In this document: positions 4,410 through 32,481 of the stretch, piece by piece
Layout of the letters: each line of letters opens with the position of its first letter
How positions within the stretch are numbered: position 1 is the stretch's first letter
Virus record (IMG/VR): IMGVR_UViG_3300025162_000016
Location: 186,001 to 250,000 of that record
Strand: one strand, 5' to 3'
DNA: 64,000 nucleotides
The notes under the pieces: model-generated
What the model was told of the DNA's origin: nothing
Seen by the model: only the letters and a program-made list of their open reading frames with translations
The model's database searches: none
Made by a program: the position numbers and the translations under genes

Positions 4410-4415
4410 TAATCA

Positions 4416-5799: not shown

Positions 5800-6595
5800 T
5801 CAAAGATAAAATGCCATGGCTAAGGAGTTGTTTTCTACTATCATTCGAAACCTTCTAAATATCCGGAAATCATTTTCGGGCATGAAGAAGTTATGTTTTA
5901 ACATTATATCGATAAACCATACATTTCCTTTAGCATTTACATGTTGAGGTTGGGCTTCATTCACACTGAAAGTGCTATCGTGAATGAGTAGATTTGTACG
6001 TCCTGTCAGATTTTTTACCGTAGCATTTAAATCCGGAATATGTTCAAAACAATCCATCGCAAGAATGGCGTCGTAATGAGTTGCCGGTCCTTTTAAAAAA
6101 TCATCTACATCGATCATTTGGATTCCGGCAATTCCAAATTTTTTCATTAAAAATTCACAGAACTTATATTGATGACTAGTTTTAAAATCACAATATAGAA
6201 TATGTAGGTCTGGAAATTTCTCTTTAAGAAGAAAGCTCGTAATACCCAGTCCTCCCCCCATAATCCACCAGCGAAGTTATTTTGTAATTTTCTATTGCAT
6301 TATAAATGAAACCTAGTTTATCTGTAAACATTGAACAAGCATTCCATGGTAATAAATCAAAGATGTAAAAATCGGTTTCTTTATACCAATTTTCAATAGT
6401 TATATTATCGTGATTTTTTAATTTATTCCATTCTTCCGATAGTTTCTCAACCCCTTTCCGGACGTTGAGATTTCCCATCTTGTTGAATTGATAAAGCAAT
6501 GTTTTTACATCATCTTTAGAGTATTTCTCTTTGAAATATTCATGAACAAGATCGACGCAGGTATTTTCATTTGAAATAGTGTCAAGGATAGTCAT
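5800..6595 (-). pseudogene. class I SAM methyltransferase frameshifted in a G6 tract
   Basis: ORFs 6224-6595 and 5800-6261 join as VDYGGGLGITS if one G is removed at 6254-6259; later AMDCFEHIPD motif. Confidence 0.8.
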
Positions 6596-7845
6596 TCTAT
6601 GATTTGGTTGACATACCATGGCGAGTCGGCATGTATTAGTTTTTTTTCAATTTGATTGATATTACGAATATCAAAAGTAAAGATGTCGTATTCCATTATT
6701 CCGATTTCACCGGAATCTTTAATCAAAGGCGGGAATTGTTTAATGATATTCATTTGCGATTGATTAAAATGTGTAGCATCGAATCTCACGATGATATCAT
6801 TTGAATAATTCGACGTAGATGGAAGTATTCGTTTTGAAAGATCGAATTTTGTATGCGGTTGTTCCTGTTCAATATAGCGTTTAATATTGTCTGGCGATTC
6901 TAGAAATAAGGTATCACACCATGGTTCAATGAATTCAATCAGTTTGTATGGACAGTTTTTTACGACAAATCCGGTATCATATCGGGGGTTGACAATAGGT
7001 AGCATATTTGCATCATGTAAAACATCAGAATGCCATTTTCTCCACCATTCCCGAAATTTGTTTTGACGAAGTTTAGTATATTCATCCGAATCTTGGGCTC
7101 GTTTCCATATATTATTTGAACTCACCGGTATTTCTTGGATTATTTTAATACCGTCTTTAAATCGACTACCTCGACAAGTCATGTGATATACAAAAGACGA
7201 ATGTATTTGTATTAAATTATATCCTTTTAATAAAAATCTATTTCCAATGTCGCTATCCTCTAATTCCATGGGTGCGAAGACTCTTTTATCGTGTCCTCCT
7301 ATAGATAAAAAATCTTTTTTGTGAATTATCCAAGGAGCAAAAAATCCTTGTGTTTTTTTATTTGTTAATTCATTTTTTTTAATAAAATTTAAAAAAGCAT
7401 CCTCTTGGAACTGTTCCGGTTCCATTCCAAAATCGGCAATGTGTTTAGATGGATCTGGGGGATGAAGTGGCGGTTCTACTCTTGTTAGAGTGACTACCAT
7501 ATTTTCTTCCAAAATATTAAGGGCATTTTCCAATGCATTACTTCCCATATACATGTCGGCATGAAATATACCTACAATGGGTTTAGTTGATAAATCTATT
7601 CCTCGATCATATAAAACCGTGTGGCCAATTCGTTCTGGGCCATTATTTCTTGAGATTTTTAAGTTCGAATCGAGTTGTTGTTTTTCGTTCATCCATTTCC
7701 ACGTTCCATCGGTGGAAGCGTCGTCTAACATTATAATTTCAACATTATATTTAATATTTTTTCTAATGGAATTATATGCCCATTGTAAATATTTTAAATT
7801 ATTTCTACTGGGTAGTATTAAAGATATTTGGTCCAATTTATTCAT
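6592..7845 (-). CDS. GT2 glycosyltransferase
   Basis: ISLILPSRN, DDASTDGT, FHADM, LEDSD. Confidence 0.9.
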   Translation of the reverse strand: MNKLDQISLILPSRNNLKYLQWAYNSIRKNIKYNVEIIMLDDASTDGTWKWMNEKQQLDSNLKISRNNGPERIGHTVLYDRGIDLSTKPIVGIFHADMYMGSNALENALNILEENMVVTLTRVEPPLHPPDPSKHIADFGMEPEQFQEDAFLNFIKKNELTNKKTQGFFAPWIIHKKDFLSIGGHDKRVFAPMELEDSDIGNRFLLKGYNLIQIHSSFVYHMTCRGSRFKDGIKIIQEIPVSSNNIWKRAQDSDEYTKLRQNKFREWWRKWHSDVLHDANMLPIVNPRYDTGFVVKNCPYKLIEFIEPWCDTLFLESPDNIKRYIEQEQPHTKFDLSKRILPSTSNYSNDIIVRFDATHFNQSQMNIIKQFPPLIKDSGEIGIMEYDIFTFDIRNINQIEKKLIHADSPWYVNQIIE

Positions 7846-7859
7846 AAATTTTCTTTATA

Positions 7860-8759
7860 TCATTTGGGAAGGTTAAACAATCTACCAACCCATTTGAGTA
7901 AAAGCTCTCTTTCTAGATTTAATCTATCGTTAAACATATTGCATCTGTATCCGGTATAATCTCTTACAATATTATAATCTTTAAGAGGACTAGTGTTGTG
8001 ATGTCCTTTGAGTATGTTTGTTACATGGTATTGTGGAATTTTATGATATAATCTAGACCATTGGAGGCAATAATCATCGTGTCCTATTAACAAATCTGGA
8101 CAGTATAAATTATCCGGCATTTGGTCCGATAAGACGGATGCGGGGGATTCGATTGTATTTAATGGTTGTCCGGGTACTACAAAAGGTATAGTTATAATGG
8201 TTGGGTCTCCCCATTTTTCATTAAATGCGTAAAGTGTTTCCAATGAAATTGGATCTGCGAATCGCATAAATCCATCTTTTATATCTTCGTTTTTTATGTT
8301 TTGAATAGAACAATGTTCTATTGGTTCCCATCCTCCCCACATTTTTCTGGCGGCAAATGTTAAAATATATGGGCGAGTTTTACATTGTTTGTCAAATGTT
8401 TCCGATATATAAAAATATTCCAATGGAAGTAAACAATCTGCGTCTCCCCAATAATTGAGTCCATTTTTTATTGAAAACTCTCGTTTAACGCAAGGGGGTC
8501 CAAAAATCGGATCTTTGTCTGTTATATGAACAATCTCACAGTGTTTAACAAAGGGATGACTCATGAAATGAATCCATTGTTCTTCCGGATCATTGATCGG
8601 AGTGTCCATGTAATTTTTTGTTTGTCCGTTTAGAATTAGAATAAATTCGGTAGGGGCGGTTGAATATTTATATGCATTTTCTATAGACGTTAAAGTTTCA
8701 TTAACTACTTTTACGTCTTTCCAAGAAATTTGCATTGTAAATCTATTTTTATTTATCAT
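7860..8759 (-). CDS. putative GT-A glycosyltransferase
   Basis: WGDAD DxD-like motif, GHDD; cluster context. Confidence 0.55.
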   Translation of the reverse strand: MINKNRFTMQISWKDVKVVNETLTSIENAYKYSTAPTEFILILNGQTKNYMDTPINDPEEQWIHFMSHPFVKHCEIVHITDKDPIFGPPCVKREFSIKNGLNYWGDADCLLPLEYFYISETFDKQCKTRPYILTFAARKMWGGWEPIEHCSIQNIKNEDIKDGFMRFADPISLETLYAFNEKWGDPTIITIPFVVPGQPLNTIESPASVLSDQMPDNLYCPDLLIGHDDYCLQWSRLYHKIPQYHVTNILKGHHNTSPLKDYNIVRDYTGYRCNMFNDRLNLERELLLKWVGRLFNLPK

Positions 8760-11208
8760 GAAGTTGTCTTTGTAGTTTGATTTTAGTCATTTGTAAAATG
8801 TTATCCACTGCCGCTTGTCCGAATTTTTCTTTTATTCTAATTAAAAATTTAGGATTTGTATGATACGTTAAAAAGGCGTCATCTCGGAATTTCAATACTT
8901 CTTTATTACTCAAATGGTTGGTATGCATTGGAAACGTTTCATATGCATGAAAGGAAAATCCCAAATAGTCGGTTGGCATCGCATCTCCTTTATCCAGTGC
9001 TTCTTTATAGATTTGGCTTCCCGGTAATGGCATCACTGCATACGCATTCCATCCACGGGTGGCAAGCTCAAGGCTCAAATCCAATGTAGCTTTCATGCTT
9101 TCATAATCATCCCCTATATGTCCGAAAAGATAGTTTCCCAAGACTTCAATATCTGCTTCCTCTATCTTTTTTACTACATCCCGAATATCGACATCTAAGA
9201 ATTTTCCTTTAGAAATTTCCAGACGAATTTTTTGGCTTCCGCTTTCAATTCCGAGACATAACCATCGGAATCCCGCTTTACGAAGAAGTTTCAAAACGCC
9301 GGGGTCTTTGGATACAGTATCGATACGTGAATATGCCCATAAAAGGAGGTCTTTACTGTATTCTTTTTTGGCAAGTCCTTCACAGATAGGCACATAGTAT
9401 TTAGAATTGAGTAAAAACATTTCGTCGCATAAGCGAATAGTGCTAACTCCCATCTCATGGAGTTTATCAAACTGTTTCAATATAAATTCCGGAGACCAAT
9501 ACCGCATACCTTTGTAGTTTGATGCTACACCGATAGGGTCATTATCGTTTCGGTTGATGATATTAATCATGCAATTATGGGTCAAAACGTTGTTTGCATA
9601 AAAATTATTATGAGGTTCGCATTGTAAATTAAACGTTTCAGTATTTTCGTCTATAACTTTTATATCTTCAATTCTAACATAATGGGGGCAGTTTATAGCC
9701 TTTTCTAACATTATTTTTGTATATCTTTTACCCCCAAAACCTCTATCAAAATTAGTTTTTGAGTGACAACTGGCACAAAGAGTTATAAGATTTGAAGTTT
9801 GATTATTATACTTATTATAATCAATGTGGTGAACATCCAATTTTCCGGTCGTTTTTTTACATTCCTGACATGTATTATTATCACGTATTTTAACGGATTT
9901 TCTCACTCGTCTGTTTTTGCTTAGATAATATGGTTTAAATTTTACACATTTTCCACCGTCCCATTTGGGATTTTTTTCTTTTAAAAATCGTTCACTTGCT
10001 TTATCTTGATTTTTTCGTGAATACATCGGATTAGCATCAGATAACATTTTTTCTCGGGCCATTTTAGATGCCATTTCTCGTCCTTTTTCTGTACAAAGAT
10101 GTGGAATTGTTTTACCCGTAATGAATCGTTCTTTGCTTGTTTTGGAAGTTTTAGACCGGGTTTCATTGACAAACATGGGATTATAATGCTTCATTCTGAA
10201 TATATTTTTGTCGTTTGCATCAACTACAAGTATTTTATCTCCTATTTTAAGATTTTCTGCGTTTACCCACGTTCCATCGTTATAAAATGGATGCTCTCCG
10301 GTACATTTCACGATTTTATTATCGGTTAGTTTAATATGATATATTTTTTCGGAACGTAGATTGTTAGACACTATTACAACGGTTTCAGAAATTTCCAATT
10401 TATTTTCATCCCATGCTAAGAGTTTATCTCCGATTTTTACATCTTCGATTTTTTTATTCTTATCATGTGAAAGAGTTATTTTCGTGCCCGCAGATAAACA
10501 GAAATTACACCCAAATTTGCATCCAAATGATGAAAATAATGTAGCATAGGGTGTTCGGAGGTTAGCATCGTAGTTAGCGTGCCACATGGGAGCCCTATAA
10601 AGATCAAAGGGTTTTTCTTTCTTTGGTAACAAGTCCCACGCATAGCCGGGAAGATCAATGTCCATTCGTTCTTGAGGCACAATCTTTCCAGGTGCCGTTA
10701 AAAAAGGCTTTCCGTCTTTTCGAAATCCAATTCCGTTAATTTGTCCCAAGGTTGACGGGTCCGTTGTCGCTTGAATACCGGCGAGTGCCCACAATGCATA
10801 GACGCCTTCGTTAGTTAGAACAATATCAATGCTCGGCTCGTCTTGCAGAGCTTTGATGGGAAGAGCCTGCATATAGGAACCTACGAATATGTTCGGGATT
10901 TTGCAATCACTAGATTTGAGATATTTAGACAATTGTGTCGCCCCATACATACTCACTGTTCCGGCATTTACGTTTTGTCCATAGACAACGAAGCATAACC
11001 ATTTGGGATTTAGTTCTTTGATCCTTTGAAGTCCCTGTTCGTGAGATTGGTTCTCCGCATTCATGTCAAGAATGCCAACCTCATGTCCTACGGAACGACA
11101 CGACTCGGCAAGTAGTAAACCCCAAGTGGGTGGTTCAATAGAAGAATAGGTTGTTTTCAGTTCTTGATAAACCCGGTCATTTGATGGTATTACAAATAAG
11201 ATGTCCAT
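8749..11208 (-). CDS. cobalamin-binding radical SAM enzyme (class B methylase-like) with intein
   Basis: N-terminal B12-binding domain; CKFGCNF|C after splicing gives CxxxCxxC; DEMF, GIESG; start re-placed at MDILFV. Confidence 0.9.
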   Translation of the reverse strand: MDILFVIPSNDRVYQELKTTYSSIEPPTWGLLLAESCRSVGHEVGILDMNAENQSHEQGLQRIKELNPKWLCFVVYGQNVNAGTVSMYGATQLSKYLKSSDCKIPNIFVGSYMQALPIKALQDEPSIDIVLTNEGVYALWALAGIQATTDPSTLGQINGIGFRKDGKPFLTAPGKIVPQERMDIDLPGYAWDLLPKKEKPFDLYRAPMWHANYDANLRTPYATLFSSFGCKFGCNFCLSAGTKITLSHDKNKKIEDVKIGDKLLAWDENKLEISETVVIVSNNLRSEKIYHIKLTDNKIVKCTGEHPFYNDGTWVNAENLKIGDKILVVDANDKNIFRMKHYNPMFVNETRSKTSKTSKERFITGKTIPHLCTEKGREMASKMAREKMLSDANPMYSRKNQDKASERFLKEKNPKWDGGKCVKFKPYYLSKNRRVRKSVKIRDNNTCQECKKTTGKLDVHHIDYNKYNNQTSNLITLCASCHSKTNFDRGFGGKRYTKIMLEKAINCPHYVRIEDIKVIDENTETFNLQCEPHNNFYANNVLTHNCMINIINRNDNDPIGVASNYKGMRYWSPEFILKQFDKLHEMGVSTIRLCDEMFLLNSKYYVPICEGLAKKEYSKDLLLWAYSRIDTVSKDPGVLKLLRKAGFRWLCLGIESGSQKIRLEISKGKFLDVDIRDVVKKIEEADIEVLGNYLFGHIGDDYESMKATLDLSLELATRGWNAYAVMPLPGSQIYKEALDKGDAMPTDYLGFSFHAYETFPMHTNHLSNKEVLKFRDDAFLTYHTNPKFLIRIKEKFGQAAVDNILQMTKIKLQRQLHDK
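9574..10500 (-). mobile_element. intein with HNH homing endonuclease (309 aa)
   Basis: Starts CLSAGT, block B CTGEHPF, ends VLTHN|C; HNH core TCQEC..VHHID..N...NLITLC..CH. Confidence 0.92.
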
Positions 11209-11209
11209 G

Positions 11210-12184
11210 TTAATATGTTTGATTTTGATAAAGAGTAAGGAATTCCGTAATTTTTTCAATTGATAATCCATGTGCATCTAACATTTCATCTCTCGTGCCA
11301 TTTCCTAAAATATAGCCTTCTTCTAGACCAAAGCGTTTGAGTTTACATTGAAGATTTTTATCGGCAATGGTGTCTGCAATAACGGAGGAAAATCCTCCCC
11401 CGTTTAATGTTTGCTCTTCTAATGTTACAACCAACTCAGCGTGTTTTAAATAGTTATCTAGTACAACCGGAATGGGTTTGATTTGAAATACATCAAATAC
11501 GTTACAATCGATTGTTTTAGTAATTTTAAGTGCTCGACTTAATAGATATCCTGAAGTAACCAAACAAATTTTTGTGCGGCATCCTTCGTCTTTCAATGGA
11601 AACACTCCTTGATTGTTTTCCATATCAAATCCATTATACTGTGTTTCGGTGGTGGCATCATATGTTTTTTCATAAAACACATCCAAAGCGGTATCGTATG
11701 CTCGTTCAAGTCTTATATAAATCAATTTTCGGTTTTTATACGTATATTTTACCAATTGTTTGACTGCGGGATTGGTTGCGGGAGAATAAATTTCTATTCC
11801 GCATATGCTTCGCATATACGCCATATCATCTGTCGGATTGTGGGCGGCACCCGCTGGTGCATATCCTAGTCCGACTCCCACTCCTAGAATGGTAATAGGG
11901 TTTTGAGCAATTGCACATGAATATCTAATCTGCTCGAAGCATCGAGCCGACCAGCATGCCATATAATAAACATATACCTTTTTCCCACGGCTAGAGAACC
12001 CTGCCGCTACATTGATGGAGTTCTGTTCTGAAATGCCGGTTGCGAAAAATTGATTTGGAACTTCTTCTCTCCATTTGTCTAACGCCGGTGCTCCCATATC
12101 CGGAGAAATTAGAATTACATCTTTATCCTTTTTAGCTAGAGTTAGAAGCTCCATTAAAAATAAATCTCGTTGGGTAACACTCAT
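11210..12184 (-). CDS. transketolase C-terminal (pyrimidine-binding) subunit
   Basis: GISEQN, EQIR, YIRLER, TLEEQ; ATGA overlap with upstream gene. Confidence 0.9.
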   Translation of the reverse strand: MSVTQRDLFLMELLTLAKKDKDVILISPDMGAPALDKWREEVPNQFFATGISEQNSINVAAGFSSRGKKVYVYYMACWSARCFEQIRYSCAIAQNPITILGVGVGLGYAPAGAAHNPTDDMAYMRSICGIEIYSPATNPAVKQLVKYTYKNRKLIYIRLERAYDTALDVFYEKTYDATTETQYNGFDMENNQGVFPLKDEGCRTKICLVTSGYLLSRALKITKTIDCNVFDVFQIKPIPVVLDNYLKHAELVVTLEEQTLNGGGFSSVIADTIADKNLQCKLKRFGLEEGYILGNGTRDEMLDAHGLSIEKITEFLTLYQNQTY

Positions 12185-12966
12185 GACAGTTCGTCCTTTC
12201 CTTGTTGAATAAGCTCTGATTCTTTGGGAATAATAGTATGATATTGCCATACTCCCTCCATATAACTAACGCCTTTGCCTTTGATGGTGTTGGCTATAAC
12301 TATCTGTGGTTTTTTTGGTTTGTGTGCAAAAATATGTCGTATTTGTCTAAAATTATGACCATCAATTTCTTCTACTTCGTAGCCAAATGCTTTGAACTTT
12401 TCGGGTAGGGGGTTAAGTTTTACCATATCTTCGGTTGCGCCAAGGATACAAAGTTGATTTCGATCCACGATTAGCCGAATGTTATTCAAGTTGTGATGGG
12501 AAATAAACAGTAATGTCTCCCACACTGAGCCTTCATAGAGTTCCCCATCTCCGAGAATCACATAAATGTCTCGGTCTTTATCATATCCTCGTCCAGCAGC
12601 GAACCCAATACCATTTCCGAGTGATCCGCCCACGAATTGACAACCGGGAATTTTGTAATTACAATGCATGGGTAAAATGCCATTTTTTGTTCCATACTTT
12701 GCTAGTTCTTCCATTGGAAAGTATTTCAAATCCGCAAGAATAGGATACATTGTGGGTGCTCCATGTCCTTTACTGAAAACTATCTCATCATTGTCTGGAT
12801 CAAATAATGAGTATGAATCATAAAATAAGGACACTAATATGTCAACGGTTGACAGACAAGTAGCTAAGTGTCCTATTTTTGAACGGGTCTTGAAATCAAA
12901 AATTTCTCGTCGTACCCATTTCGCTTTTTCTCGTAATTCTTTTGAGGATTTTAGGATAGTTTTCAT
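12181..12966 (-). CDS. transketolase N-terminal (TPP-binding) subunit
   Basis: SKGHG, GSLGNG, GDGELYEG...DRN, TIKGKG. Confidence 0.92.
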   Translation of the reverse strand: MKTILKSSKELREKAKWVRREIFDFKTRSKIGHLATCLSTVDILVSLFYDSYSLFDPDNDEIVFSKGHGAPTMYPILADLKYFPMEELAKYGTKNGILPMHCNYKIPGCQFVGGSLGNGIGFAAGRGYDKDRDIYVILGDGELYEGSVWETLLFISHHNLNNIRLIVDRNQLCILGATEDMVKLNPLPEKFKAFGYEVEEIDGHNFRQIRHIFAHKPKKPQIVIANTIKGKGVSYMEGVWQYHTIIPKESELIQQGKDELS

Positions 12967-13496
12967 GTTTTTATTCCCGCATCACGGGCAGACAGAATTG
13001 GATTGTTATTAACTGGCCAAAATACATTGTATTCTGGATCATTCCACATGATATGATATTGGTCTTCTTGTTTAACATAACTGTTTGATAGTTTATAACT
13101 AAATATGCAAGTGTCAGATATACATAGGTGAGCGTTTACACAGCCAGCCGGAACAATTACTTGTTTTCTATTTTTATCGTTCAATTGGAAACTTTCAACC
13201 TTTTTATATGTTTTTGAATCCTTTCTAAGGTCGATGACCACTAACTGAATAATTCCATGGAGACATTGAAGGATTTTCCATGTTTTTGCGTCTCCGTGAA
13301 ACCCTCGTAATACGGTTTGCTGTGAGAATGAAAAAGAATCTACTATAAATGTGGTTTTCGGAAGCCCAAATTCATTGAAAATTCTATCATATTCATCCTG
13401 ATAGAACGTTTCAACGTTTTCGCCCCGAAAATCGTAGAAAACATCTGGCTCTATTGTCAGGAGTTTGTCTATTTTTTGGCTTTGGGTGATGTTCAT
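12963..13496 (-). CDS. rmlC: dTDP-4-dehydrorhamnose 3,5-epimerase family
   Basis: DFRG, VLRGFH, DLRKDSKTY, WNDP...WP, LSARD. Confidence 0.9.
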   Translation of the reverse strand: MNITQSQKIDKLLTIEPDVFYDFRGENVETFYQDEYDRIFNEFGLPKTTFIVDSFSFSQQTVLRGFHGDAKTWKILQCLHGIIQLVVIDLRKDSKTYKKVESFQLNDKNRKQVIVPAGCVNAHLCISDTCIFSYKLSNSYVKQEDQYHIMWNDPEYNVFWPVNNNPILSARDAGIKT

Positions 13497-14864: not shown

Positions 14865-14866
14865 AT

Positions 14867-21301: not shown

Positions 21302-21308
21302 ACTATGC

Positions 21309-23898: not shown

Positions 23899-24884
23899 AC
23901 TAATTGAATATCACTATACATCTTATTTTGCCAAATGTCAAGATTATAATATGTTTTATAAAAATGTTTGGCATTGGTTGAGCACCTTTCATAAAAACCA
24001 GTAGGTTCTTTTAAACGTCGTGCTAATTGACGAGCACCGTTGACATCCTCTGCTTCTACCGATAATTCGGGGAAACATTTCCGTTGGGTATCCACTCTAA
24101 TATTACCTATACACGGAATTCCAAAATAAGCGCAATTGAGACTAAAAGTACCTGCGGCTACAGTAGGCATTAGATGAACTGCATATTTGAATGTGGATAA
24201 CATTTTAATCCATTCGACCCATGTCAACCTTGGTATTACATATAAATTAGGAACCTGCTCTTCCCCCGGTTGAGTACAATGTGATGTATGAACATGAATG
24301 GGGCAATCAAATTCATTGGCTACTAAATAACTCTGAAATCCTCCATACCAACGACACATTCCACCGCCTATTATTGCTCTATTTTCAGGAGAGGGTATAA
24401 TTGATTGTATTGAATCTTCTATCATTAACGTTGGTATGGTGGAGACACATTTACCTGGAAACAATCCTTTGTACCAATTAGTGTCATATTCATTATGCGC
24501 AAAAATAATATCGACCTCTGCAATAGTATTATAAAAGTTAAATTGATCCGATATTGACATGTCGTTTACATACGAAGTTGGACCTTCTTGAATAAATGCT
24601 ACTTTTTTATTTTGTTTTTTAATATCTTCTACAAATGACATCGCATAAAGTTGAGAAAATCTATTTGGAATGTTATTCAATTTAATTCCCTCGACATTTA
24701 ATGATACTCCGCCTTTGGGCAGAATAAGCATAACCCAATCATATCCTGAAACTTGAGAATAGTTCATGATATTAAAGTGATCGGCATTAAGGGCAAACAT
24801 CCATGCCATCTCTGCTCGCATATTAGGATGGTTTATTGGGACTTTCCCAGTCCATCCCATTTCAGTTAAAAAACAAATTCGCAT
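23895..24884 (-). CDS. putative GT-B glycosyltransferase
   Basis: AAGTFSLNCAYFGIPCIG resembles GT-B nucleotide-binding helix; cluster context. Confidence 0.6.
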   Translation of the reverse strand: MRICFLTEMGWTGKVPINHPNMRAEMAWMFALNADHFNIMNYSQVSGYDWVMLILPKGGVSLNVEGIKLNNIPNRFSQLYAMSFVEDIKKQNKKVAFIQEGPTSYVNDMSISDQFNFYNTIAEVDIIFAHNEYDTNWYKGLFPGKCVSTIPTLMIEDSIQSIIPSPENRAIIGGGMCRWYGGFQSYLVANEFDCPIHVHTSHCTQPGEEQVPNLYVIPRLTWVEWIKMLSTFKYAVHLMPTVAAGTFSLNCAYFGIPCIGNIRVDTQRKCFPELSVEAEDVNGARQLARRLKEPTGFYERCSTNAKHFYKTYYNLDIWQNKMYSDIQLV

Positions 24885-24886
24885 GT

Positions 24887-25573
24887 TTATTTTGTTTTTT
24901 GCCCGAACACGGTATGTCCACGATTTTCATCAATCGTAAACCATTCATTATATCGAATATTTGTTTTTAATTGAGTTGCCATGGTTTTTTCGTGATATAA
25001 TGCCAAATTAAAATCAAATGGCAATGTGGTAAAGGAAGCGTGCCCTTCTATTTTCTCATGCAGTCGTCGTTCCCAATGAATTCGAGATGGATCGTTTTTA
25101 TAAATGCGTCCTTGAAAATCAGGAGCATTTACTATGGGTCTGTTATCACATTCTGGACATGGAGTAAGTCTCCACCCCCATGTTTTAGCATCTTGAATTG
25201 TTACTCCAATATAATCATTAATTCGGCTAACAAAAATCAATTCAATTGTTGGATTTAACTCAATAATGGATTTGATATTAATAATTAGATTTGGATTTGG
25301 TATCTCATCCCCGTCAATTTGAAATATCCATGGATTTTTACATTGCTCGTTTCCAAAATTTTTATGTTGGGAATAATTACGATCAAGTTTGTGCGGAATT
25401 AATTGTATAGAATCTTTCCATTTATTGAAAATTTCTATTGTATTCGGATTATCAGAGAAATCATCTAATATAATAACTTCATCTTCTATATCTTTATGAG
25501 CAATAACATTGGTTAAACACTTATCTAAAGTATCACTTTCATTGTGTGATGTTATTAAATAACTTATTTTCAT
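24887..25573 (-). CDS. GT2 glycosyltransferase (KdtX/LgtF-like)
   Basis: ISYLITSHNE, DDFSD, QIDGDE, PDFQGR, LHE. Confidence 0.88.
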   Translation of the reverse strand: MKISYLITSHNESDTLDKCLTNVIAHKDIEDEVIILDDFSDNPNTIEIFNKWKDSIQLIPHKLDRNYSQHKNFGNEQCKNPWIFQIDGDEIPNPNLIINIKSIIELNPTIELIFVSRINDYIGVTIQDAKTWGWRLTPCPECDNRPIVNAPDFQGRIYKNDPSRIHWERRLHEKIEGHASFTTLPFDFNLALYHEKTMATQLKTNIRYNEWFTIDENRGHTVFGQKTK

Positions 25574-28148
25574 AATTTTTATTTTCACTTATCGGCATTT
25601 TCGCAATTTCCGCTTGAGTTGGAGGATTTATTGGTGTAGACGCAGTTGGTAATTTTGGGAGATTTAGTTTTTTTAATTTTGGAAGTATAATTTGTTGCGG
25701 TAATACGAATTTAGGAACATATTTTTCCAAAAGCGAGTGAAATGCTTTATCCATTGCCTCAATTGAGAATTTCTCGGCATTTTCAGCACGAAGTAATTCC
25801 GCATTAGGTAATAGCGTATCGTAATTATTAAAAGCTTGTCGCATTTGTTCGGCGGCTTTACCATAATCGACTGTAAACCATTGCGATTCAGCTACAAACC
25901 ATTCATTTACTGCTTCGCCGGAAATCTGTTCTAGTTTACCTTCAAAGAAATTTGCATATTTCGGATTCATGAAATCCAGATGACCACTCCATTTTGGTGC
26001 AATCAATGGTTTTCCGCTTAATGTTGATAATAACATGGGATGACAATTGTGTACTACAAAATTTTCCGTACAGTAACTTTCATCTTCTTCGACTGATAAA
26101 TTATATACCATTCCTTCATATGGTAAGGACTCGATGGTTTTTAGTTTAAATACATGATATGCTACATTATCATATGAAACGGAAAATGATTTGGGAAGTC
26201 CTCCACGGGACAAATATTTATCATTTTGGTATTGAATATTACAAAAACTGTGATTTTTATTTAAAATATCAATAAGTGCGGTATTAGACTTATAATTTGA
26301 AGTTCGAATACGACTAACCGGTGCATTAAATTTATTGTTATCTTTTACATCATGACAAGAGTGTATATTTAATTTTAATAAACACTCTCGTACATCTCTA
26401 ATTAAACTGTCATTTACTAATTGAAGAGATATGTTTTTATTATTTTTTAAACTACCATCTCCCATGAAAATTGATGATATTAAATTTTCAACAAATATTT
26501 TTGATGAATTTTTTAATATCATGGGAATTCTTTTATAAATTGCCCCTGATCCAAATAAAGCCGTTAAGAATTCTCCGATAATTGCGGAATAAAAAATCAG
26601 CTTTAATGAATTTTTAGTTTTGTGAGGTTCGAGGGAGTAAGAATCAATTTCAAAGACAGTTTTGAAACATTCTATTAATTCTTTTGCTATTGTAAGTTCC
26701 TCGTTTTTATTTAAAGAAAATATGATTGCTCCGTTGGAAACGCATCCCTCGGATAGAAAATAACCACATATTTTTGCAAATTCTGGAGATAAAACAATAT
26801 TATTTTTTATTTTCTTTATAGTAGTTTCATTTGAATGAATATAGGTTAAGTTTTCGTCTCGCAATTCAATGTTTGGACACTGTATAAATTCAGATATGTT
26901 TATGGCCGGAGGTGTGGTCCAAGTGTGTTCTTCGGGCAATGCAAGATAATCCGATAGTTTTAATTCCTCTGTTGAAATCCATTGTAAAACATTATTTCTA
27001 TATACATAACATCTATGGTTGGGGGTAAATTGATATGAAATAGAATTGATTCCATTGTAAACCGATATTTTTTTCATTTCTCCACTATAATGTCTAGATA
27101 ATGATGCGGTTACTTTTTTCCATTGTCCCGTATGTGTAAGCACCATATCTTTATTAGTGACATTTTTTATATTTTTTAATCCGGTTTTGGTAACAATTGG
27201 AGTATCTTCTAAAGTACAATAACCCTCTCCATGAGTAAATGAAACGTGAACCTTCACTTTTTTATGATTATAAAGTGAATTCATTTCGATATCACTTAAT
27301 TCGCCATGTAGAAGATAGATGTTTGGCCAGTTGGTAATAGTAGAATTTTCTTTTTTTACCATATCTGTCACTTCTTTTATTTTAGTCAAACACTCATATC
27401 TATCTATGTTAGATAAAGTCGCTCCACTGGTTTTAAGAATAAGTGCAGGGGGATTTTTTACTCCTTTGAATGTCTCAAGGAAAGTTTTCATTAACCATCC
27501 GATAGATTTTCTATCTGAATTCATTGAACCACCCGTCCATTGACCCACGAACAGAAATGCGAAGTTTTCAGTAATCCCAGACATGGCAGTTTCCAATGAA
27601 TCAATCACCGCATTCGTTTTATGATATAAATTGGTGTTCGCTCCCCAAAATAAAACTTCAATGGGGGTCTTTACGATCAATGGTTCAGTTACACCGGTAG
27701 GAAGTTTTTTAGAATATTGTGCTCCTGCGAATACATCTTTACCATGTTGTGACATGACAATATTTAAATCCATTCGGTTAAGACCTTCTAACCATTCTGG
27801 TTTAGGAATGGTAGTTTCAATGGCGGCGGTAATTCCAATATTGTATTTACCAATTTTCATGATTCCTTGCGGAGTCTGTAAAAATTCATTGGGAATAGAT
27901 ACTTGAATAAATAATTCCGGCTGTCGAGTTAATGGTCCTTGAAGTAGTCTACTAAGAAGTTCTTTAGTTAACGGATCCTTGCCTTCCATTTCTAAGTTTC
28001 TCTGTGGGCATTGTCCCCAACGTGTAGGAACAACTCGAACGTCGTATTTATCGTATTTTAATAGACTTTTAGCTAATGCTAACGCCCAATCTCCATACCC
28101 ACTTCTCGTCATTAATGGCGAGGTAATTACACAAACAGGTTTATTCAT
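25539..28148 (-). CDS. GT4-like glycosyltransferase with intein
   Basis: SGYG, FLFVGQW..RKS, HGEGY|CHP. Confidence 0.88.
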   Translation of the reverse strand: MNKPVCVITSPLMTRSGYGDWALALAKSLLKYDKYDVRVVPTRWGQCPQRNLEMEGKDPLTKELLSRLLQGPLTRQPELFIQVSIPNEFLQTPQGIMKIGKYNIGITAAIETTIPKPEWLEGLNRMDLNIVMSQHGKDVFAGAQYSKKLPTGVTEPLIVKTPIEVLFWGANTNLYHKTNAVIDSLETAMSGITENFAFLFVGQWTGGSMNSDRKSIGWLMKTFLETFKGVKNPPALILKTSGATLSNIDRYECLTKIKEVTDMVKKENSTITNWPNIYLLHGELSDIEMNSLYNHKKVKVHVSFTHGEGYCTLEDTPIVTKTGLKNIKNVTNKDMVLTHTGQWKKVTASLSRHYSGEMKKISVYNGINSISYQFTPNHRCYVYRNNVLQWISTEELKLSDYLALPEEHTWTTPPAINISEFIQCPNIELRDENLTYIHSNETTIKKIKNNIVLSPEFAKICGYFLSEGCVSNGAIIFSLNKNEELTIAKELIECFKTVFEIDSYSLEPHKTKNSLKLIFYSAIIGEFLTALFGSGAIYKRIPMILKNSSKIFVENLISSIFMGDGSLKNNKNISLQLVNDSLIRDVRECLLKLNIHSCHDVKDNNKFNAPVSRIRTSNYKSNTALIDILNKNHSFCNIQYQNDKYLSRGGLPKSFSVSYDNVAYHVFKLKTIESLPYEGMVYNLSVEEDESYCTENFVVHNCHPMLLSTLSGKPLIAPKWSGHLDFMNPKYANFFEGKLEQISGEAVNEWFVAESQWFTVDYGKAAEQMRQAFNNYDTLLPNAELLRAENAEKFSIEAMDKAFHSLLEKYVPKFVLPQQIILPKLKKLNLPKLPTASTPINPPTQAEIAKMPISENKNYENKLFNNITQ
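26046..27218 (-). mobile_element. intein with LAGLIDADG homing endonuclease (391 aa)
   Basis: CTLEDT start, FTPNH, GYFLSEG and IFMGDGS motifs, VVHN|C end. Confidence 0.92.
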
Positions 28149-28534: not shown

Positions 28535-29139
28535 ATTTTTTGTAGAACAAAACGAAACTTTCCCGACCTTGTATCCGTATAATAATCGTCCATTTGGGTC
28601 TCGGCATTAATTGTAATAATTTCCTTTCCAGTATTAATATCGAGAATATACATGTAATGAGTTTTTCTGTCTTTAACCTGTTCTCTGAAAAGATATTTCC
28701 AAAAATTGAACCCCTTTTCGGTTTGATTTTCATCTGAGATTATTACAGATTCTCGTTTTAATATATAATCTTCAAAAAAATTTCGTGCTAAACCGTTATC
28801 TCCCTTAAAATTCCATATATGCTTGTTTTCTATTCCTTTAATAGGAGAGGTGATGCGGGTAAAAGAATACTCCATTACAATAAATGGTTTATCTCTCTCC
28901 ATTAAATAATACGTTATATCGTTTCCTTCTATTTTAGAAAATAACCGATATGTAAAACTACCGATTTTATAATTTTCGAGTTCTGTCCCGTTTTTTTCTA
29001 CCCATACCGCATCTCGGGCATTTAAAATTACATCATCACACTGATAATTCCCCCGATAATATTTGTTGGGCAATTCCATTAGGTTATACGTCTCCAATAT
29101 ATATTCTTTATAATCAAAATTATAGGGGTCGAATGTCAT
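28531..29139 (-). CDS. hypothetical protein
   Basis: 202 aa; ISD.NQT.KG..FW motif; ATGA overlaps on both sides. Confidence 0.65.
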   Translation of the reverse strand: MTFDPYNFDYKEYILETYNLMELPNKYYRGNYQCDDVILNARDAVWVEKNGTELENYKIGSFTYRLFSKIEGNDITYYLMERDKPFIVMEYSFTRITSPIKGIENKHIWNFKGDNGLARNFFEDYILKRESVIISDENQTEKGFNFWKYLFREQVKDRKTHYMYILDINTGKEIITINAETQMDDYYTDTRSGKFRFVLQKI

Positions 29140-29717
29140 TGTTGAGATCGTGCTTTAATTTGTTCACTATATGGAATAGAAACATGAACTCCTCCCGTCT
29201 TTAAATAAGTTTGTAAAATACTAGGAGTTGGTTCGGTTTTTTGCGAATCAAACTTAATCTGTTCTTCTGTAAAAATTTCGGTTAAAGGTTTTCCTTTTTT
29301 ATCGGAACTTCCAAATCCACCGGCTCCCCGTTGAGTTTGTGGAAGATCATCCACTAATTCCCATTCCGCTTTATTATAAAACTCAAATATAATTTGGGCT
29401 ATCTTATCTCCAATTTTGATTTCTTTTTCGGTTTTTCCAAAATTGATTAATATAACTCCTATTTCTCCTCTATAATCCTCATCAATAACCCCCCCTAGCA
29501 CATCAATGCCATCTTTATATGCTAGTCCACTTCTGGGTGCAATTCTTCCGTATTGTCCTGCCGGAATGCTAATAGATATTCCCGTCTTAAATAGTTTTCT
29601 ATCCATTGGCATTAAAATATAATCTTCTATAGAATATAAATCATACCCCGCCGAGTGGATACTTCCGCTTATAGGTATAATTGCCGAGTCAATTAGTTTT
29701 TTAATGTATATTTTCAT
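29136..29717 (-). CDS. dut: trimeric dUTPase
   Basis: AGYDL, PRSG, GVIDEDYRG, AQ, RGAGGFGSS. Confidence 0.97.
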   Translation of the reverse strand: MKIYIKKLIDSAIIPISGSIHSAGYDLYSIEDYILMPMDRKLFKTGISISIPAGQYGRIAPRSGLAYKDGIDVLGGVIDEDYRGEIGVILINFGKTEKEIKIGDKIAQIIFEFYNKAEWELVDDLPQTQRGAGGFGSSDKKGKPLTEIFTEEQIKFDSQKTEPTPSILQTYLKTGGVHVSIPYSEQIKARSQQ

Positions 29718-29838
29718 GAAACATATGGTAACTCTATTTTAGCATATTTACAAGATATTATAACGCAAACTCGTCATTTTGTTACGGTAATTACTGTCAT
29801 AGGAACAAGTTGTCCATCGCTATAAATAAACCAGTATG

Positions 29839-32481
29839 TCATAGTTTTTCTAATTTCTTTTTTGTTTCTTCGAGTTTAGTTTCAATCGCAACCTGATCGA
29901 TTGTAGGAACCTCAAATCCCATGTTTTTATCTAACATAAAATTGCCTACATGATCTTTTACCGAATACAATCCAAACGATTTAGATGGTTTCCAATTATG
30001 GAATACATATTCCATTGCATCCACATATTGCTTACACATATTAGTGGCATTTATCCCGCCTTCATTGCACGCCCAACGTCTACCTTCGGCCCCACATTTT
30101 TCTCGCATTGATTTAGACATTTTATACCAATACATATATGCATCCGCAATATCTTCCCATTTCGTTAGATCATCGAAAATATACGGAGTAGGAATACTAC
30201 CTTGAATCATTCTAGTAACTGGCCACAAAGGATATGCCCAAACCCCATGATTTTTATATTTTCCCTCGCTATTAGAACCAAATCCCTGACTAAATTTAAT
30301 CGGATTTCCTTCATCGTCGGTTTGACCAATTTGATCTTGAAGACCACCCGTAACTGATACTATTACCGGAGTCTCACACATGATACTTTCAGCACATGAT
30401 AGTCCATAGCCTTCATTCGAATTATGCAAAATAAATGATTTCATGGTATAAGAATTGTCTTCTTCTACCTCAATATTATATACTTTTCCGGTATAAAGAT
30501 ACTTCTCGATTTTATTTATCGACATCAAATAATATCCGTCTTTAAACCAACTTCTGGATGAATCATTATCATCACTGGTATGAGTAAAATATATTTGATG
30601 ATGAGTATTTCCGGGTTTATATCCAGATGTTCCTTCCGCTAAGCGGATTTTTTTATTCAATCTTACCAGTGCGGTTATTAACTGTTGTTGAAGAACATTG
30701 GAAACAGTAACGATTTTAGTATAGTTACTATCGTTCGTATGACCATCGTATCCATCGGAATCTATAAGGCCATTTATGAATGAATTTAGGATAGTTTCAT
30801 CTTTATTAAACAATATTTCCGATGGAATTTTTTTGGTGTTAGAACTGTTTCCACATATTGTTTTGAAAAAGTTTTCCATTATACCTATAAATGGATGGGA
30901 GAAAAATAAATTAGTGCATTTTTTGTTTTTTTGACCATGGGGTTTAATGGAATAACTTCCACCGAATATATTCACAAAGATATTTCCTATCTTATTGATT
31001 TCATCGTTACCATAATCAGAATTAAAACATATATTATTGTTTGATCCATCTCCGCACCATCTTCCTAAGAGATATGCTAAATCGTTGGTCAGTGGAATTT
31101 TTCTATTTAATACATTTTTACTGTGGGGAAGAAATATTTCAGAATCATTGGACAAATACTTTCTGCTTTTGTATTCGGGAATGAATTTTTCCAAATCAAA
31201 AACCACATTTTCGGTCATATTTTCTGTGAGTTTTGGATACATTACTAAATCTCCCGGTGATAATTCTCCGGATGGAATCCATTCCATATATTGTTGAATT
31301 GACTCGTTTTCGTTCAACAATTTATTTTTCATTTTACTTTTCTTTACCGCCCACACTTTATGTTCGGAGGTAAGTTCCAATGGTTCATTTAAGTTAAATG
31401 GAGTAATTTTAACCATTTCACAGTCAACATTATCATATTCAAATGTTTTTAGTACTGGACGAAATCTTCCTTTATGCGTCAAAACGGTTTCTCCAATTTT
31501 TATTTCTTCAATATTTTTGGGTCCGATTTTAGTTGTTACTTTATAACCCGGTGGAATACAAGATGCATTCACAGTGACATCTGCCATGCTATAAAGATAT
31601 GCCATTTCTTCTGGCGGCATTTTTGCGGGAGAAAAAATTATATCATAATCCGGACATAACGCTTCTTTTACTGCAATTAAATTCGTCCCCGCCTCTTGCA
31701 TTATTTCGGTGTGAAGTAACAAACAACATTTTGCCGCTTCTTCTTTGGGAAGATTATCACAGAAAGTGCGGTAACCTAATATAATGTTGCTAGTGCGTTT
31801 TCGTTGAACATTTCTACTATTGTAAAAAATAACGAAATCGTATTTTTTTCCATTAAAAACCGCTTTTCTGCGATCTCTATATTCTTGTGTAGTAGAATCT
31901 TTTTTATGAAACATATCTTCATTGATTCCATGCGGAACATAATGAAGAAGTGTTTTTCCATTCATTGGTTCATTGATGGTACAACAATTCTTAGGATCAA
32001 GAACCCATTTATTAATATTTTCTGTTTGTCTACTAATGGATAGTAATGCATCGCAGCTTTCATAGAACGCTCGATTATACATTGGATACGGAATGTCATC
32101 CCAGATGTTATAATATGTAATCGGGAGTTTTTTACGTAAACTATGTTCCAATGAGAAAAGCCATCCAAAAAATCTTGGATCGGTAATCATGCAAATGGCA
32201 TCGGGGCGTTCTTGATTAATAATAGAATGTAAAATATTTTCATTGCCATATCCATCGACCGGATAAAGTTTTATATATGCATCATTTATTTTTCTAAGTT
32301 GATTTGTTGCTTGTGATAAATCTAAAACCTTTCCGGTGTCTGGATTTTTAATTGCCCCGGCAATACAACAAAAATCATATTTATGCGCACACCCCAGAAT
32401 CATTTCTCGCCCCATAGTTGCAACCCCCGAATGCATTCTTATATCATCTCCAATCCAAAGTATTTTTTTCTTATTGCTCAT
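29839..32481 (-). CDS. GT4-like glycosyltransferase with intein
   Basis: HSGVAT, VPHGI, SRN..RK, AS|SNEGYGLSCAES (ExxxxxxxE). Confidence 0.9.
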   Translation of the reverse strand: MSNKKKILWIGDDIRMHSGVATMGREMILGCAHKYDFCCIAGAIKNPDTGKVLDLSQATNQLRKINDAYIKLYPVDGYGNENILHSIINQERPDAICMITDPRFFGWLFSLEHSLRKKLPITYYNIWDDIPYPMYNRAFYESCDALLSISRQTENINKWVLDPKNCCTINEPMNGKTLLHYVPHGINEDMFHKKDSTTQEYRDRRKAVFNGKKYDFVIFYNSRNVQRKRTSNIILGYRTFCDNLPKEEAAKCCLLLHTEIMQEAGTNLIAVKEALCPDYDIIFSPAKMPPEEMAYLYSMADVTVNASCIPPGYKVTTKIGPKNIEEIKIGETVLTHKGRFRPVLKTFEYDNVDCEMVKITPFNLNEPLELTSEHKVWAVKKSKMKNKLLNENESIQQYMEWIPSGELSPGDLVMYPKLTENMTENVVFDLEKFIPEYKSRKYLSNDSEIFLPHSKNVLNRKIPLTNDLAYLLGRWCGDGSNNNICFNSDYGNDEINKIGNIFVNIFGGSYSIKPHGQKNKKCTNLFFSHPFIGIMENFFKTICGNSSNTKKIPSEILFNKDETILNSFINGLIDSDGYDGHTNDSNYTKIVTVSNVLQQQLITALVRLNKKIRLAEGTSGYKPGNTHHQIYFTHTSDDNDSSRSWFKDGYYLMSINKIEKYLYTGKVYNIEVEEDNSYTMKSFILHNSNEGYGLSCAESIMCETPVIVSVTGGLQDQIGQTDDEGNPIKFSQGFGSNSEGKYKNHGVWAYPLWPVTRMIQGSIPTPYIFDDLTKWEDIADAYMYWYKMSKSMREKCGAEGRRWACNEGGINATNMCKQYVDAMEYVFHNWKPSKSFGLYSVKDHVGNFMLDKNMGFEVPTIDQVAIETKLEETKKKLEKL
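30421..31560 (-). mobile_element. intein with LAGLIDADG homing endonuclease (380 aa)
   Basis: CIPPG start, LTSEH, LLGRWCGDG and INGLIDSDG motifs, ILHN|S end. Confidence 0.92.

Follow-up and report, generated by a model that had tools for sequence, protein, structure and literature searches.

Two glycan gene clusters in an aquatic jumbo phage related to Immutovirus and Microcystis phage Mel-JY01

Phages have been known to carry polysaccharide gene clusters since 2005, when the T4-like cyanophage P-SSM2 was shown to carry 24 'LPS' (lipopolysaccharide) genes in two clusters (PMC1079782), and large sugar clusters are also found in S-SSM7, pelagimyophages and other jumbo phages (PMC3037559, PMC7029224, PMC7824862). 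Their purpose has been debated since then, with host-surface change, DNA protection and stuffer DNA all proposed. Here we analyse a stretch of 64,000 nt (the window) from the IMG/VR record IMGVR_UViG_3300025162_000016, in which two gene clusters and a separate gmd gene together hold ~29 recognisable glycan genes. An earlier sequence-only reading of this DNA had taken autonomous glycosylation on such a scale to be established for giant eukaryotic viruses, a claim to novelty that the clusters just named do not support. What is new is the lineage and the scale, a vertically conserved glycosyltransferase (GT) core, the composition of a sugar cassette with a wide distribution in phages and bacteria, and three inteins, one of them a presence/absence polymorphism in a radical-SAM (S-adenosylmethionine) iron-sulfur motif.

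The 'LPS' clusters of P-SSM2, S-SSM7 and S-SM2 and the 'capsular polysaccharide modification systems' of jumbo phages resemble the window in that large lytic phages combine T4-type modules with one or two clusters of tens of genes, and in encoding epimerases/dehydratases, kinases, HIGH nucleotidyltransferases, cupin isomerases and several GT families without export genes. The window differs in its lineage, in its number of glycan genes and conserved GT core, and in having a heptose/ColD/thiamine diphosphate (ThDP)/radical-SAM cassette with inteins in three enzymes. Pelagimyophages are likewise aquatic and T4-like, encode GTs, an rfaE-like protein and Ugd, and gain or lose radical-SAM cassettes between close relatives, but their genes lie with tail fibres whereas those of the window flank replication genes, and the composition and likely chemistry of the cassette were not analysed in that study (PMC7029224). 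The loci of Flavobacterium phage immuto and Mel-JY01 have orthologous PD-(D/E)XK nuclease, GT4, GT-B and GT2 genes in the same order, followed by variable sugar genes. They are, however, only ~6-11 kb long and free of inteins, whereas the locus in the window has expanded to ~27 kb, and their sugar genes are different (WecE-type transaminases and WcaG, with a pilin-glycosylation-like gene in immuto).

Chloroviruses and mimivirus glycosylate autonomously, using soluble virus-encoded GTs that act in the cytoplasm on virion proteins. The window shares with these giant viruses multidomain GT-GT and GT-methyltransferase enzymes and virus-made nucleotide sugars, and the best structural match of one core GT-B is the chlorovirus protein 3oy2. 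Giant viruses infect eukaryotes, however, and glycosylated virions would be a prediction for the present lineage. Virion glycosylation in mycobacteriophages, as described by Freeman et al. in 2023 (cited in PMC12619734), reportedly relies on few GTs encoded beside structural genes.

We propose, with a probability of about 0.5, that the window encodes a native two-locus glycan biosynthesis system with a phage-specified acceptor. The system would have three layers. The first would be the lineage-conserved soluble GT4, divergent GT-B and GT2 beside the PD-(D/E)XK nuclease, with an extra GT-B in the closer metagenomic relatives; the second a sugar cassette common to many bacteria and T4-like phages; and the third a variable set of GTs, GT-GT and GT-methyltransferase fusions, O-methyltransferases, a sulfotransferase-like protein, Ugd and Gmd. 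The product would be a methylated hetero-oligosaccharide built in the cytoplasm of the infected cell, most probably on a virion protein that the phage itself specifies.

Phage origin and gene content

The window corresponds to positions ~186,001-250,000 of its 368,758-bp parent record (100% identity). A contig from a second sample, 3300009502_001313 (102,940 bp), is 100% identical over all fetched parts (window 5835-27004 and 28745-51164), and so are ENA assemblies over window 1-11491 and 52296-64000. The index of the sequence collection has 116 blocks with one of the window proteins, and the phage has been recovered from many samples. The viral origin assumed in the sequence-only reading is borne out by PHROG matches to a T4 gp43-type PolB, gp44- and gp62-like clamp-loader subunits and a T4-type deoxynucleoside monophosphate (dNMP) kinase (3043-3711), and by the flanks just beyond the window, which encode Rnl1, Rnl2, a Pnk-like kinase, dihydrofolate reductase, DNA ligase and the large subunit of ribonucleotide reductase (RNR) with three inteins. 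By PolB the closest isolate is Mel-JY01 (40% identity). The window is part of an aquatic jumbo phage of ~370 kb that is related to Immutovirus and Mel-JY01. A giant-virus origin, an idea raised by PolB, GT10/GT11/GT25, DUF268 and the inteins, was rejected since both PolB and the clamp loader match PHROGs of T4 type, and since the closest isolates are phages. No tRNA was detected in a scan of the window, and an Rfam search of it gave zero matches.

The glycan genes are native to this phage, because the codon usage of both clusters follows that of the core genes (r = 0.92-0.93, with the same GC and GC3), independent assemblies are identical and the GT core is kept in relatives; GC content varies between 31 and 39% across the window. 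The alternative is non-functional cargo, either a chimeric bacterial insert, which the sequence-only reading had itself raised as a danger, or 'stuffer' DNA in decay that merely takes up room in the capsid, a possibility raised for cyanophage clusters (PMC3037559). Such cargo could account for bacterial homologues of the cassette at 48-62% identity, for one frameshifted methyltransferase and for the many selfish elements (TnpB, homing endonuclease genes, inteins). The closest bacterial homologues are scattered over many phyla. A chimeric assembly or recent bacterial insert is excluded by the identical assemblies from different samples and by a composition that is uniform with the phage core. 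The reading frames are moreover long, intact and tightly packed, their orthologues are conserved like PolB, the inteins sit in catalytic motifs with all splicing residues kept, and a sister strain has an intact copy of the frameshifted gene. Cargo is thereby largely refuted, and we give it next to no weight.

Gene classes were assigned by Pfam, NCBIfam and PDB searches, Atlas structure comparison, and AlphaFold2 (AF2) models searched with Foldseek (Table 1). The classes and positions given in the sequence-only reading were all confirmed by the Pfam, NCBIfam and PDB searches. Cluster 1 (5.8-32.5 kb) encodes 9 or 10 soluble GT proteins, two of them without a Pfam match, where about eight had been noted, together with the four predicted SAM-methyltransferase domains. 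Its description as a co-oriented and largely ATGA-coupled run holds for orientation and packing, as ~7 junctions are 4-nt ATGA-type overlaps and most others overlap or are <15 nt apart, but the run is broken by a dUTPase, two small uncharacterised open reading frames (ORFs), three inteins and a homing-endonuclease gene. Likewise, the genes do lie among T4-type replication genes as stated, whereas the structural genes said to accompany them were not identifiable in the window by Pfam and PHROG searches. Cluster 2 and gmd have the announced four GTs, two methyltransferases and sulfotransferase-like gene. In total the window encodes at least 13 GT proteins from GT2, GT4/GT-B, GT10, GT11, GT25 and GT32-type families and ~10 sugar-nucleotide enzymes. 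The T4 late-promoter motif TATAAATA occurs at 23 sites in the window against 12.9 +/- 3.5 expected, with a single plausibly placed site (33598-33605) upstream of the endonuclease and GT4 genes.

Table 1. Features of the 64,000-nt window discussed in the text, with the matches on which each assignment is based (MT, methyltransferase).
Feature	Position	Strand	Basis
IS605-family TnpB (OrfB)	4438-5805	-	Pfam OrfB_IS605, Cas12f1-like_TNB, HTH; borders cluster 1
SAM methyltransferase, frameshifted	5800-6619	-	Methyltransf_12/23 in 3' piece
GT2, 417 aa	6592-7845	-	Glycos_transf_2, 4.7e-16
299-aa protein, possible GT-A (lead only)	7860-8759	-	Atlas feature neighbours
B12-binding-domain radical SAM enzyme + intein	8749-11277	-	B12-binding, Radical_SAM, Intein_splicing, HNH
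Intein 1, 309 aa, HNH endonuclease	9574-10500	-	Inside radical-SAM CxxxCxxC motif, GCKFGCNF / intein / C
Two-subunit ThDP enzyme, transketolase-like	11210-12966	-	C half 11210-12250; N half 12181-12966
RmlC-like cupin 3,5-epimerase	12963-13496	-	dTDP_sugar_isom 5e-39; TIGR01221 123 bits vs cut-off 156
Short-chain dehydrogenase/reductase (SDR)	13493-14443	-	phmmer vs PDB: 6vo6/6vo8 2e-94, full length; next match 8e-20
HIGH-superfamily nucleotidyltransferase (RfaE domain II / TagD-like)	14436-14864	-	CTP_transf_like; TIGR02199, TIGR00125; PDB 3glv, TagD
HddA/WcbL-like GHMP sugar-phosphate kinase	14867-15862	-	GHMP_kinases_N/C
ColD-type PMP/PLP-dependent sugar 3-dehydratase	15832-17004	-	DegT family 1e-60; PDB ColD/WbdK 2gms 5e-45
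NDP-sugar 6-dehydrogenase (Ugd-like)	16979-18094	-	TIGR03026 246 bits > cut-off 189.8; Pfam N-terminal + central domains
GT10-like (fucosyltransferase-type), marginal	18091-19011	-	Glyco_transf_10 2.7e-5; 24.3 bits vs cut-off 23.9
SAM methyltransferase	18978-19757	-	Methyltransf_12/25/11, ~1e-14
GT2+GT11 two-domain transferase	19742-21301	-	Glycos_transf_2 residues 7-138, Glyco_transf_11 257-490
Methyltransf_24 O-methyltransferase	21611-22201	-	1.4e-12
GT25 + DUF268 (methyltransferase-like) fusion	22276-23898	-	Glyco_transf_25 2.4e-16; DUF268 3.4e-30
GT-B (GT4-like)	23895-24884	-	No Pfam match; Atlas TM 0.71-0.78 to bacterial GT4 models
GT2, lineage core	24887-25588	-	Glycos_transf_2, 1.3e-14
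Divergent GT-B (GT4-like) + intein, lineage core	25539-28148	-	AF2 model of intein-free orthologue
Intein 2, 391 aa, LAGLIDADG	26046-27218	-	In GT-B motif, HGEG(F/Y) / intein / G position
dUTPase between two core GT-B genes	29136-29717	-	dUTPase, 2.9e-38
GT4 + intein, lineage core	29839-32481	-	Glycos_transf_1 + Intein_splicing
Intein 3, 380 aa, LAGLIDADG-type	30421-31560	-	Two residues ahead of GT4 EX7E motif, NAS / intein / SNEGYGLSCAES
Free-standing homing-endonuclease-like gene	32471-33376	-	DUF7487; phrog_3339 homing endonuclease; abuts GT4 gene
PD-(D/E)XK nuclease, conserved left anchor of glycan locus	34387-35301	-	Pfam
T4-type replication module	38745-43516	+	
PolB	38745-41396	+	phrog_262 1.6e-167
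gp44-like clamp loader	42569-43516	+	phrog_168 3.8e-74
Glycan cluster 2	44655-51062	+	4 GTs, 2 MTs, sulfotransferase-like gene
GT4	44655-45803	+	Pfam
GT4	45815-46834	+	Pfam
MT	46810-47337	+	Pfam
Sulfotransferase-like	47401-48060	+	Pfam
Uncharacterised ORF	48057-48692	+	
GT25	48737-49825	+	Pfam
GT32-type	49822-50466	+	Pfam
FkbM MT	50445-51062	+	Pfam
GDP-mannose 4,6-dehydratase-like SDR (gmd)	58346-59404	+	GDP_Man_Dehyd 3.8e-60; TIGR01472 189 bits vs cut-off 415

The gene order PD-(D/E)XK, GT4, (dUTPase-like), GT-B, GT2, GT-B, ColD-like is found in further metagenomic loci (L003/L007, L006, L010 and L167), and the order PD-(D/E)XK, GT4, GT-B, GT2 also in the cultured phages Mel-JY01 (Cyanobacteria) and immuto (Bacteroidota), where core identities to the window are 44%, 37-38% and 33-34% for GT4, GT-B and GT2, respectively. 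Conservation of the core in related phages, a point raised by the sequence-only reading, thus extends from metagenomic to cultured relatives. Between the window and L003/L007 the glycan genes are 75% (GT4), 70% (GT-B), 64% (GT2), 71% (ColD-like), 71% (kinase) and 68% (SDR) identical, and the replication core 77% (PolB) and 75% (gp44). By this measure the GT core is conserved as strongly as the replication core.

Among the individual core genes, the PD-(D/E)XK nuclease keeps the same neighbour in L003, L006, L167, Mel-JY01 and immuto, and orthologues of the GT4 are 73-76% identical in L003, L006 and L167 and 44% in the two isolates. The core GT2 has orthologues in L003, L006, L007, L010, L167, Mel-JY01 and immuto. 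For the divergent GT-B, the AF2 model of an intein-free orthologue (pLDDT 84.7) had chlorovirus GT 3oy2 as its top Foldseek match (1.8e-14), followed by MshA, BshA and HepE, and the family has >7,900 homologue clusters, on contigs up to 380 kb. Distant homologues (P0273-P0300; 730-1,090 aa, contigs up to 214 kb) are fused to GT9 (heptosyltransferase, PF01075), GT4 or GT2, and the GT9 fusions appear to be a further link between this family and heptose chemistry. The second GT-B (23895-24884), whose own Atlas clusters carry the name GT family 1, has orthologues of 49-68% identity in the closer relatives L006, L007, L009, L010 and L167. A dUTPase-like gene stands at the same place in L003, L006, L010 and L167; it is longer (~240-260 aa) and 29-37% identical.

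The extra size of cluster 1 is due to inserted modules, two in number. One, partly common to L009, lies between GT-B and the ColD-like gene and consists of GT25-DUF268, a methyltransferase, GT2-GT11, a methyltransferase, GT10 and Ugd; in L009 the GT10-like homologue is 49% identical and adjoins the GT2+GT11 gene. The other consists of the GT2 and methyltransferase genes beyond the radical-SAM gene. The 299-aa protein next to them has no Pfam or PHROG match; in the Atlas, GT2 and GT7C clusters are among its feature neighbours (0.96-0.97), with <170 features in common. Cluster 2 has a fixed position, with gp44 on one side and DUF5661/SNF2 on the other, and its content differs in L003 and L172-L175. 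Its first GT4 gene contains a 41-nt tandem unit (45201-45283, 93% identity, 42-nt spacing) that duplicates a 14-residue segment. A short local stretch of the GT32-type protein (residues 4-43) matches in Pfam the N-terminal end of the glycosyltransferase domain of TcdA/TcdB, which would be DXD-region similarity at family level only, as nothing else about it looks toxin-like. In Mel-JY01 (locus L165, 7347-8549) the replication genes are separated from the GT locus by a gene for SAM synthetase, which fits a heavy SAM demand.

The sugar-nucleotide cassette

A cassette of radical SAM enzyme, ThDP pair, GHMP kinase, ColD-like enzyme and SDR, with or without the RmlC-like protein and the nucleotidyltransferase, recurs in other genomes: its members were found in 66-78 of the 78 viral loci fetched. 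T4 core genes (e.g. gp23, UvsW, gp46/47) accompany it in 54 of these 78 and in none of 80 bacterial loci. The bacteria that have it include many Pelagibacteraceae (SAR11), Bradyrhizobium, Cohaesibacter, Lachnospiraceae, KB13, Methylopumilus and Nanopelagicus; against cyanophages the best identity of the ColD-like enzyme is 38%. The minimal cassette lacks a C4-reductase and has a ThDP enzyme in every case.

The top NCBIfam match of the GHMP kinase is HddA (130 bits against an equivalog cut-off of 600), and its top PDB matches are the heptose kinases 4usm, 4n3o and 3k85. The gene called an epimerase in the sequence-only reading does encode an SDR, but one that is closest to a C4-dehydrogenase. 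Its PDB match 6vo6 we take to be Cj1427, the GDP-heptose C4-dehydrogenase. The ColD-like enzyme has His instead of Lys opposite His188 of ColD (motif FYYAHHM), and because it also aligns best with ColD/WbdK it is probably a 3-dehydratase; an aminotransferase, as its DegT family match might imply, was ruled out by the His at the Schiff-base position. The ThDP pair has Transketolase_N, Transket_pyr and Transketolase_C domains and scores under the NCBIfam transketolase/DXS equivalog cut-offs. Its division into two overlapping genes is kept in L009 and in the strain variant L168, which rules out a single frameshifted gene; most other cassettes have a small E1_dh + Transket_pyr pair instead. For the radical SAM enzyme the top NCBIfam matches are HpnJ and BchE, all under cut-off, and the top PDB match of an intein-free orthologue is AprD4 (5e-14).

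Raushel and colleagues have shown that Cj1427 and the C3-dehydratase of serotype HS:5 give GDP-3-deoxy-4-keto-heptose in vitro (PMC10680097). The capsular heptose pathway of Campylobacter jejuni (PMC10680097) and the cassette have in common a presumed Cj1427-type C4-dehydrogenase, a PLP-dependent C3-dehydratase and an RmlC-type epimerase, and the GHMP kinase may correspond to the HddA-type kinase of that pathway. They differ in that GmhA, GmhB, an HddC-type transferase and a C4-reductase were not found in the window by Pfam searches, that the nucleotidyltransferase belongs to the HIGH family, and that ThDP and B12 radical SAM enzymes are added. GmhA and GmhB could be supplied by the host. From these likenesses we infer that the cassette would activate a heptose-type sugar phosphate, oxidise C4 and remove the 3-hydroxyl group, and that the resulting NDP-3-deoxy-4-keto sugar would be elaborated by ThDP-dependent carbon-carbon chemistry and radical-SAM chemistry.

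In the pathways of yersiniose (YerE), avilamycin (AviB1/B2) and aldgamycin a 3-deoxy-4-keto NDP-sugar is made and then receives a ThDP-added two-carbon branch at C4. The resemblance is one of logic only, as the ThDP enzyme of the window is transketolase/E1-like where theirs are acetolactate-synthase-like, and its substrate is probably a heptose. By analogy, the ThDP enzyme may add a two-carbon branch of yersiniose type at the 4-keto carbon, because the minimal cassette has no C4-reductase yet always has a ThDP enzyme; branching at C4 would in turn explain the missing reductase. Alternatively, the transketolase-like pair may supply sedoheptulose 7-phosphate. Methylation is the commonest role of B12-domain radical SAM enzymes and would also be the most likely one here, although the closest solved relative, AprD4, is a dehydratase. 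The GT11- and GT10-type transferases together with Gmd would fit GDP-6-deoxy-hexose donors, e.g. fucose- or colitose-like sugars.

Inteins, strain variation and mobile elements

Three enzymes of cluster 1 are interrupted by inteins within or next to catalytic motifs, and all three inteins have the features of class 1: an N-terminal Cys, a TxxH motif and HN followed by Cys or Ser, in frame with the host protein. Intein 1 was placed by alignment with the intein-free L009 orthologue; it keeps Cys1, TGEH and THN/C, and the third Cys of the radical-SAM motif is its +1 residue. Intein 2 keeps Cys1, TPNH and VHN/C, with Cys at +1, a position that is always Gly in 24 homologues without the intein. Intein 3, placed by alignment with the L003 orthologue, keeps Cys1, TSEH and LHN/S. 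Intein 1 is unrelated to the other two, which are homologous to each other (25% identity, 4e-19). The three enzymes would thus have to excise their inteins before the catalytic motifs could form.

Empty sites are known for each of the three. Both GTs are intein-free in L003, L006, L010 and L167, and the radical-SAM gene in L009, L168 and all 66 other viral copies. Elsewhere, the GT-B family has ~9 further intein-bearing alleles and the GT4 family has inteins in ~6 of its top 120 members. Intact inteins in catalytic motifs, alongside intein-free alleles, argue for selected and expressed enzymes rather than stuffer DNA.

The strain variant L168, an ENA scaffold of 179 kb, matches window 1-13789 at 99.75-99.9% identity and departs from it in three respects. 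Intein 1 is missing from L168, its 927 bp being absent to the nucleotide; the TnpB element that borders cluster 1 is missing as well and is thus a polymorphic insertion; and L168 has C5 where the window has a C6 tract (6254-6259, plus strand) that frameshifts the methyltransferase, so that its gene is intact (279 aa). In the window, motif I of this methyltransferase is divided between ORFs 6224-6619 and 5800-6261. The C6 tract may be akin to the phase-variable poly-G tracts of bacterial capsule-modification genes, or it may be a simple strain mutation. Around the intein 1 site, ~4 of the ~10 substitutions in the two flanking blocks (window 9555-9590 and 10480-10515 against L168:17060-17095) lie within 12 nt of the insertion point. 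Co-conversion may have produced this clustering, or the homing site may have diverged and perhaps become resistant to cleavage.

Further inteins are found outside the glycan genes. The RNR large subunit (1,905-2,038 aa), ~4-9 kb left of the window (L168:1-5196, L169:1-3200), has three (HNH_3, LAGLIDADG_3), which with those of cluster 1 gives the phage at least six; near it L169 has a resolvase + TnpB pair that is absent from L168. PolB is uninterrupted in the window. In L003 (L003:8423-12876) it has a ~1-kb in-frame insertion at window-equivalent 39310 and is further split in two (ORFs of 812 and 478 aa) with an ORF of 186 aa in between, which looks like an intein plus a gene split mediated by a homing endonuclease.

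There are three IS605-type TnpB genes in the 64 kb (4438-5805, 36888-38120 and 59571-60734). The last appears in the record of another variant as a pair of shorter ORFs (182 and 141 aa), and L006 has an 84%-identical copy of the first. Free-standing homing-endonuclease-like genes also number three: the DUF7487 gene beside GT4, which is missing from relatives, and two HNH genes (57014-57838 and 60718-61374).

The cumulative GC skew has its minimum at ~34000-35331, where transcription diverges between the minus-strand glycan/nuclease run and the plus-strand replication run (gene starts at 35301 and 35331, 30 nt apart). This could mark a replication origin, or merely the strand bias of transcription. 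A DNA-methyltransferase-like ORF (36082-36645; phrog_11619, 7.7e-24) adjoins the divergent region.

Acceptor of the glycan

Bacterial O-antigen and capsule loci of the Wzx/Wzy- or ABC-dependent type carry priming, flippase, polymerase or exporter genes. A six-frame hydropathy scan of the window revealed no polytopic membrane protein, and together with Pfam it confirmed the statement of the sequence-only reading that no flippase, Wzy, ABC exporter or priming (polyprenyl-phosphate) transferase is present; no ligase was found either. The scan yielded just two small ORFs with 3-4 transmembrane (TM) segments (44316-44618 and 3981-4409) and a C-terminal TM segment in the GT25 of cluster 2. The first of these ORFs was considered as a GtrA/SMR-type flippase, for which there was no similarity support. 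Because all transferases are soluble and export machinery is absent from the window, cytoplasmic assembly of the glycan, as already proposed, is the simplest reading.

As to the acceptor, the sequence-only reading had named the virion, the host surface or possibly DNA, and of these DNA is unlikely. Glycosylation of modified phage bases against restriction, as in T-even phages, would agree with the dNMP kinase, the dUTPase within the cluster, the DNA-methyltransferase-like ORF and the co-orientation of the locus with recombination and replication genes. A paper cited in PMC12619734 also reportedly describes viral GTs that add diverse glycans to DNA. At least 13 GTs of at least six families with O-methyl- and sulfotransferases are, however, far beyond any DNA-glycosylation system, and no hydroxymethylase was found in the window by Pfam and PHROG searches. 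Moreover, the relative immuto_2-6A has the GT core, and nucleoside liquid chromatography-mass spectrometry of its DNA gave only dA, dC, dT and fdPreQ1 (PMC10516641). Hypermodification of DNA is therefore very improbable as the function of these genes.

A phage-specified acceptor is favoured because the GTs are soluble and come without export genes, because the core spans phages of Bacteroidota and Cyanobacteria and is conserved as much as the replication core, and because inteins sit in catalytic motifs. Judged from the gene content, we consider that there is roughly an even chance of the acceptor being a virion protein encoded by the phage. The competing explanation with most in its favour is remodelling of the host surface, in which phage enzymes would extend a lipid-linked or LPS/capsule intermediate of the host and host machinery would display the product; a surface altered during a long latent period would block superinfection by competing phages. 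This is the published interpretation of the P-SSM2/S-SSM7, pelagimyophage and jumbo-phage clusters (PMC1079782, PMC7029224, PMC7824862). It agrees with loci that are fixed in position and variable in content, like bacterial O-antigen loci, with the occurrence of the cassette in surface-glycan-type loci of many bacteria, including many SAR11, and with the TM segment of the GT25 and the small 3-TM ORF ahead of cluster 2. That ORF is not flippase-like, however, and the window has none of the genes for priming, flipping, polymerisation, ligation or ABC export. The GT4/GT-B/GT2 core is, besides, syntenic in phages whose hosts have differing surface acceptors, and its conservation equals that of replication genes. 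We regard remodelling of the host surface as possible, at clearly less than even odds.

Several observations weigh against a native system with a phage-specified acceptor. Neither an acceptor nor a structural gene was found in the window by Pfam and PHROG searches, and the content of both glycan loci is hypervariable among relatives, a pattern also compatible with the arms race over the host surface that the authors of the pelagimyophage and jumbo-phage studies proposed. All sugar enzymes other than the dehydrogenase score under NCBIfam equivalog cut-offs, GmhA, GmhB and an HddC-type transferase were not found in the window, the identity of 6vo6 as Cj1427 is presumed, and the closest solved relative of the radical SAM enzyme is a dehydratase, AprD4, and not a methylase. 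Finally, one methyltransferase is frameshifted, and promoter and terminator scans of the window, that for the T4 late motif included, gave nothing above chance, with sigma-70 promoters and terminators no commoner than in shuffles.

A more far-reaching version of the proposal, which we put forward tentatively and hold to be rather doubtful, is that core and cassette form an obligate virion-glycosylation system of abundant, mostly uncultured large aquatic phages and make a new C-branched or C-methylated 3-deoxy-heptose. Such a system would be the bacterial-virus counterpart of giant-virus glycosylation, represented by thousands of homologue clusters in genomes of up to ~400 kb. The catalytic motifs would then serve as safe havens for inteins, and the radical-SAM intein would still be sweeping through the population.

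For the long debate on phage 'LPS' clusters, the present case is evidence that the phage keeps its glycan genes under selection and in working order, with a core that is conserved like DNA polymerase and common to phages of different host phyla. The cassette is widespread in bacteria, many of them SAR11, and in T4-like phages without an assigned product. Both immuto and Mel-JY01 are culturable and have the same core, which makes its purpose testable, and the GT inteins together with the polymorphic radical-SAM intein offer a clean natural setting in which to study how inteins home within phage populations.

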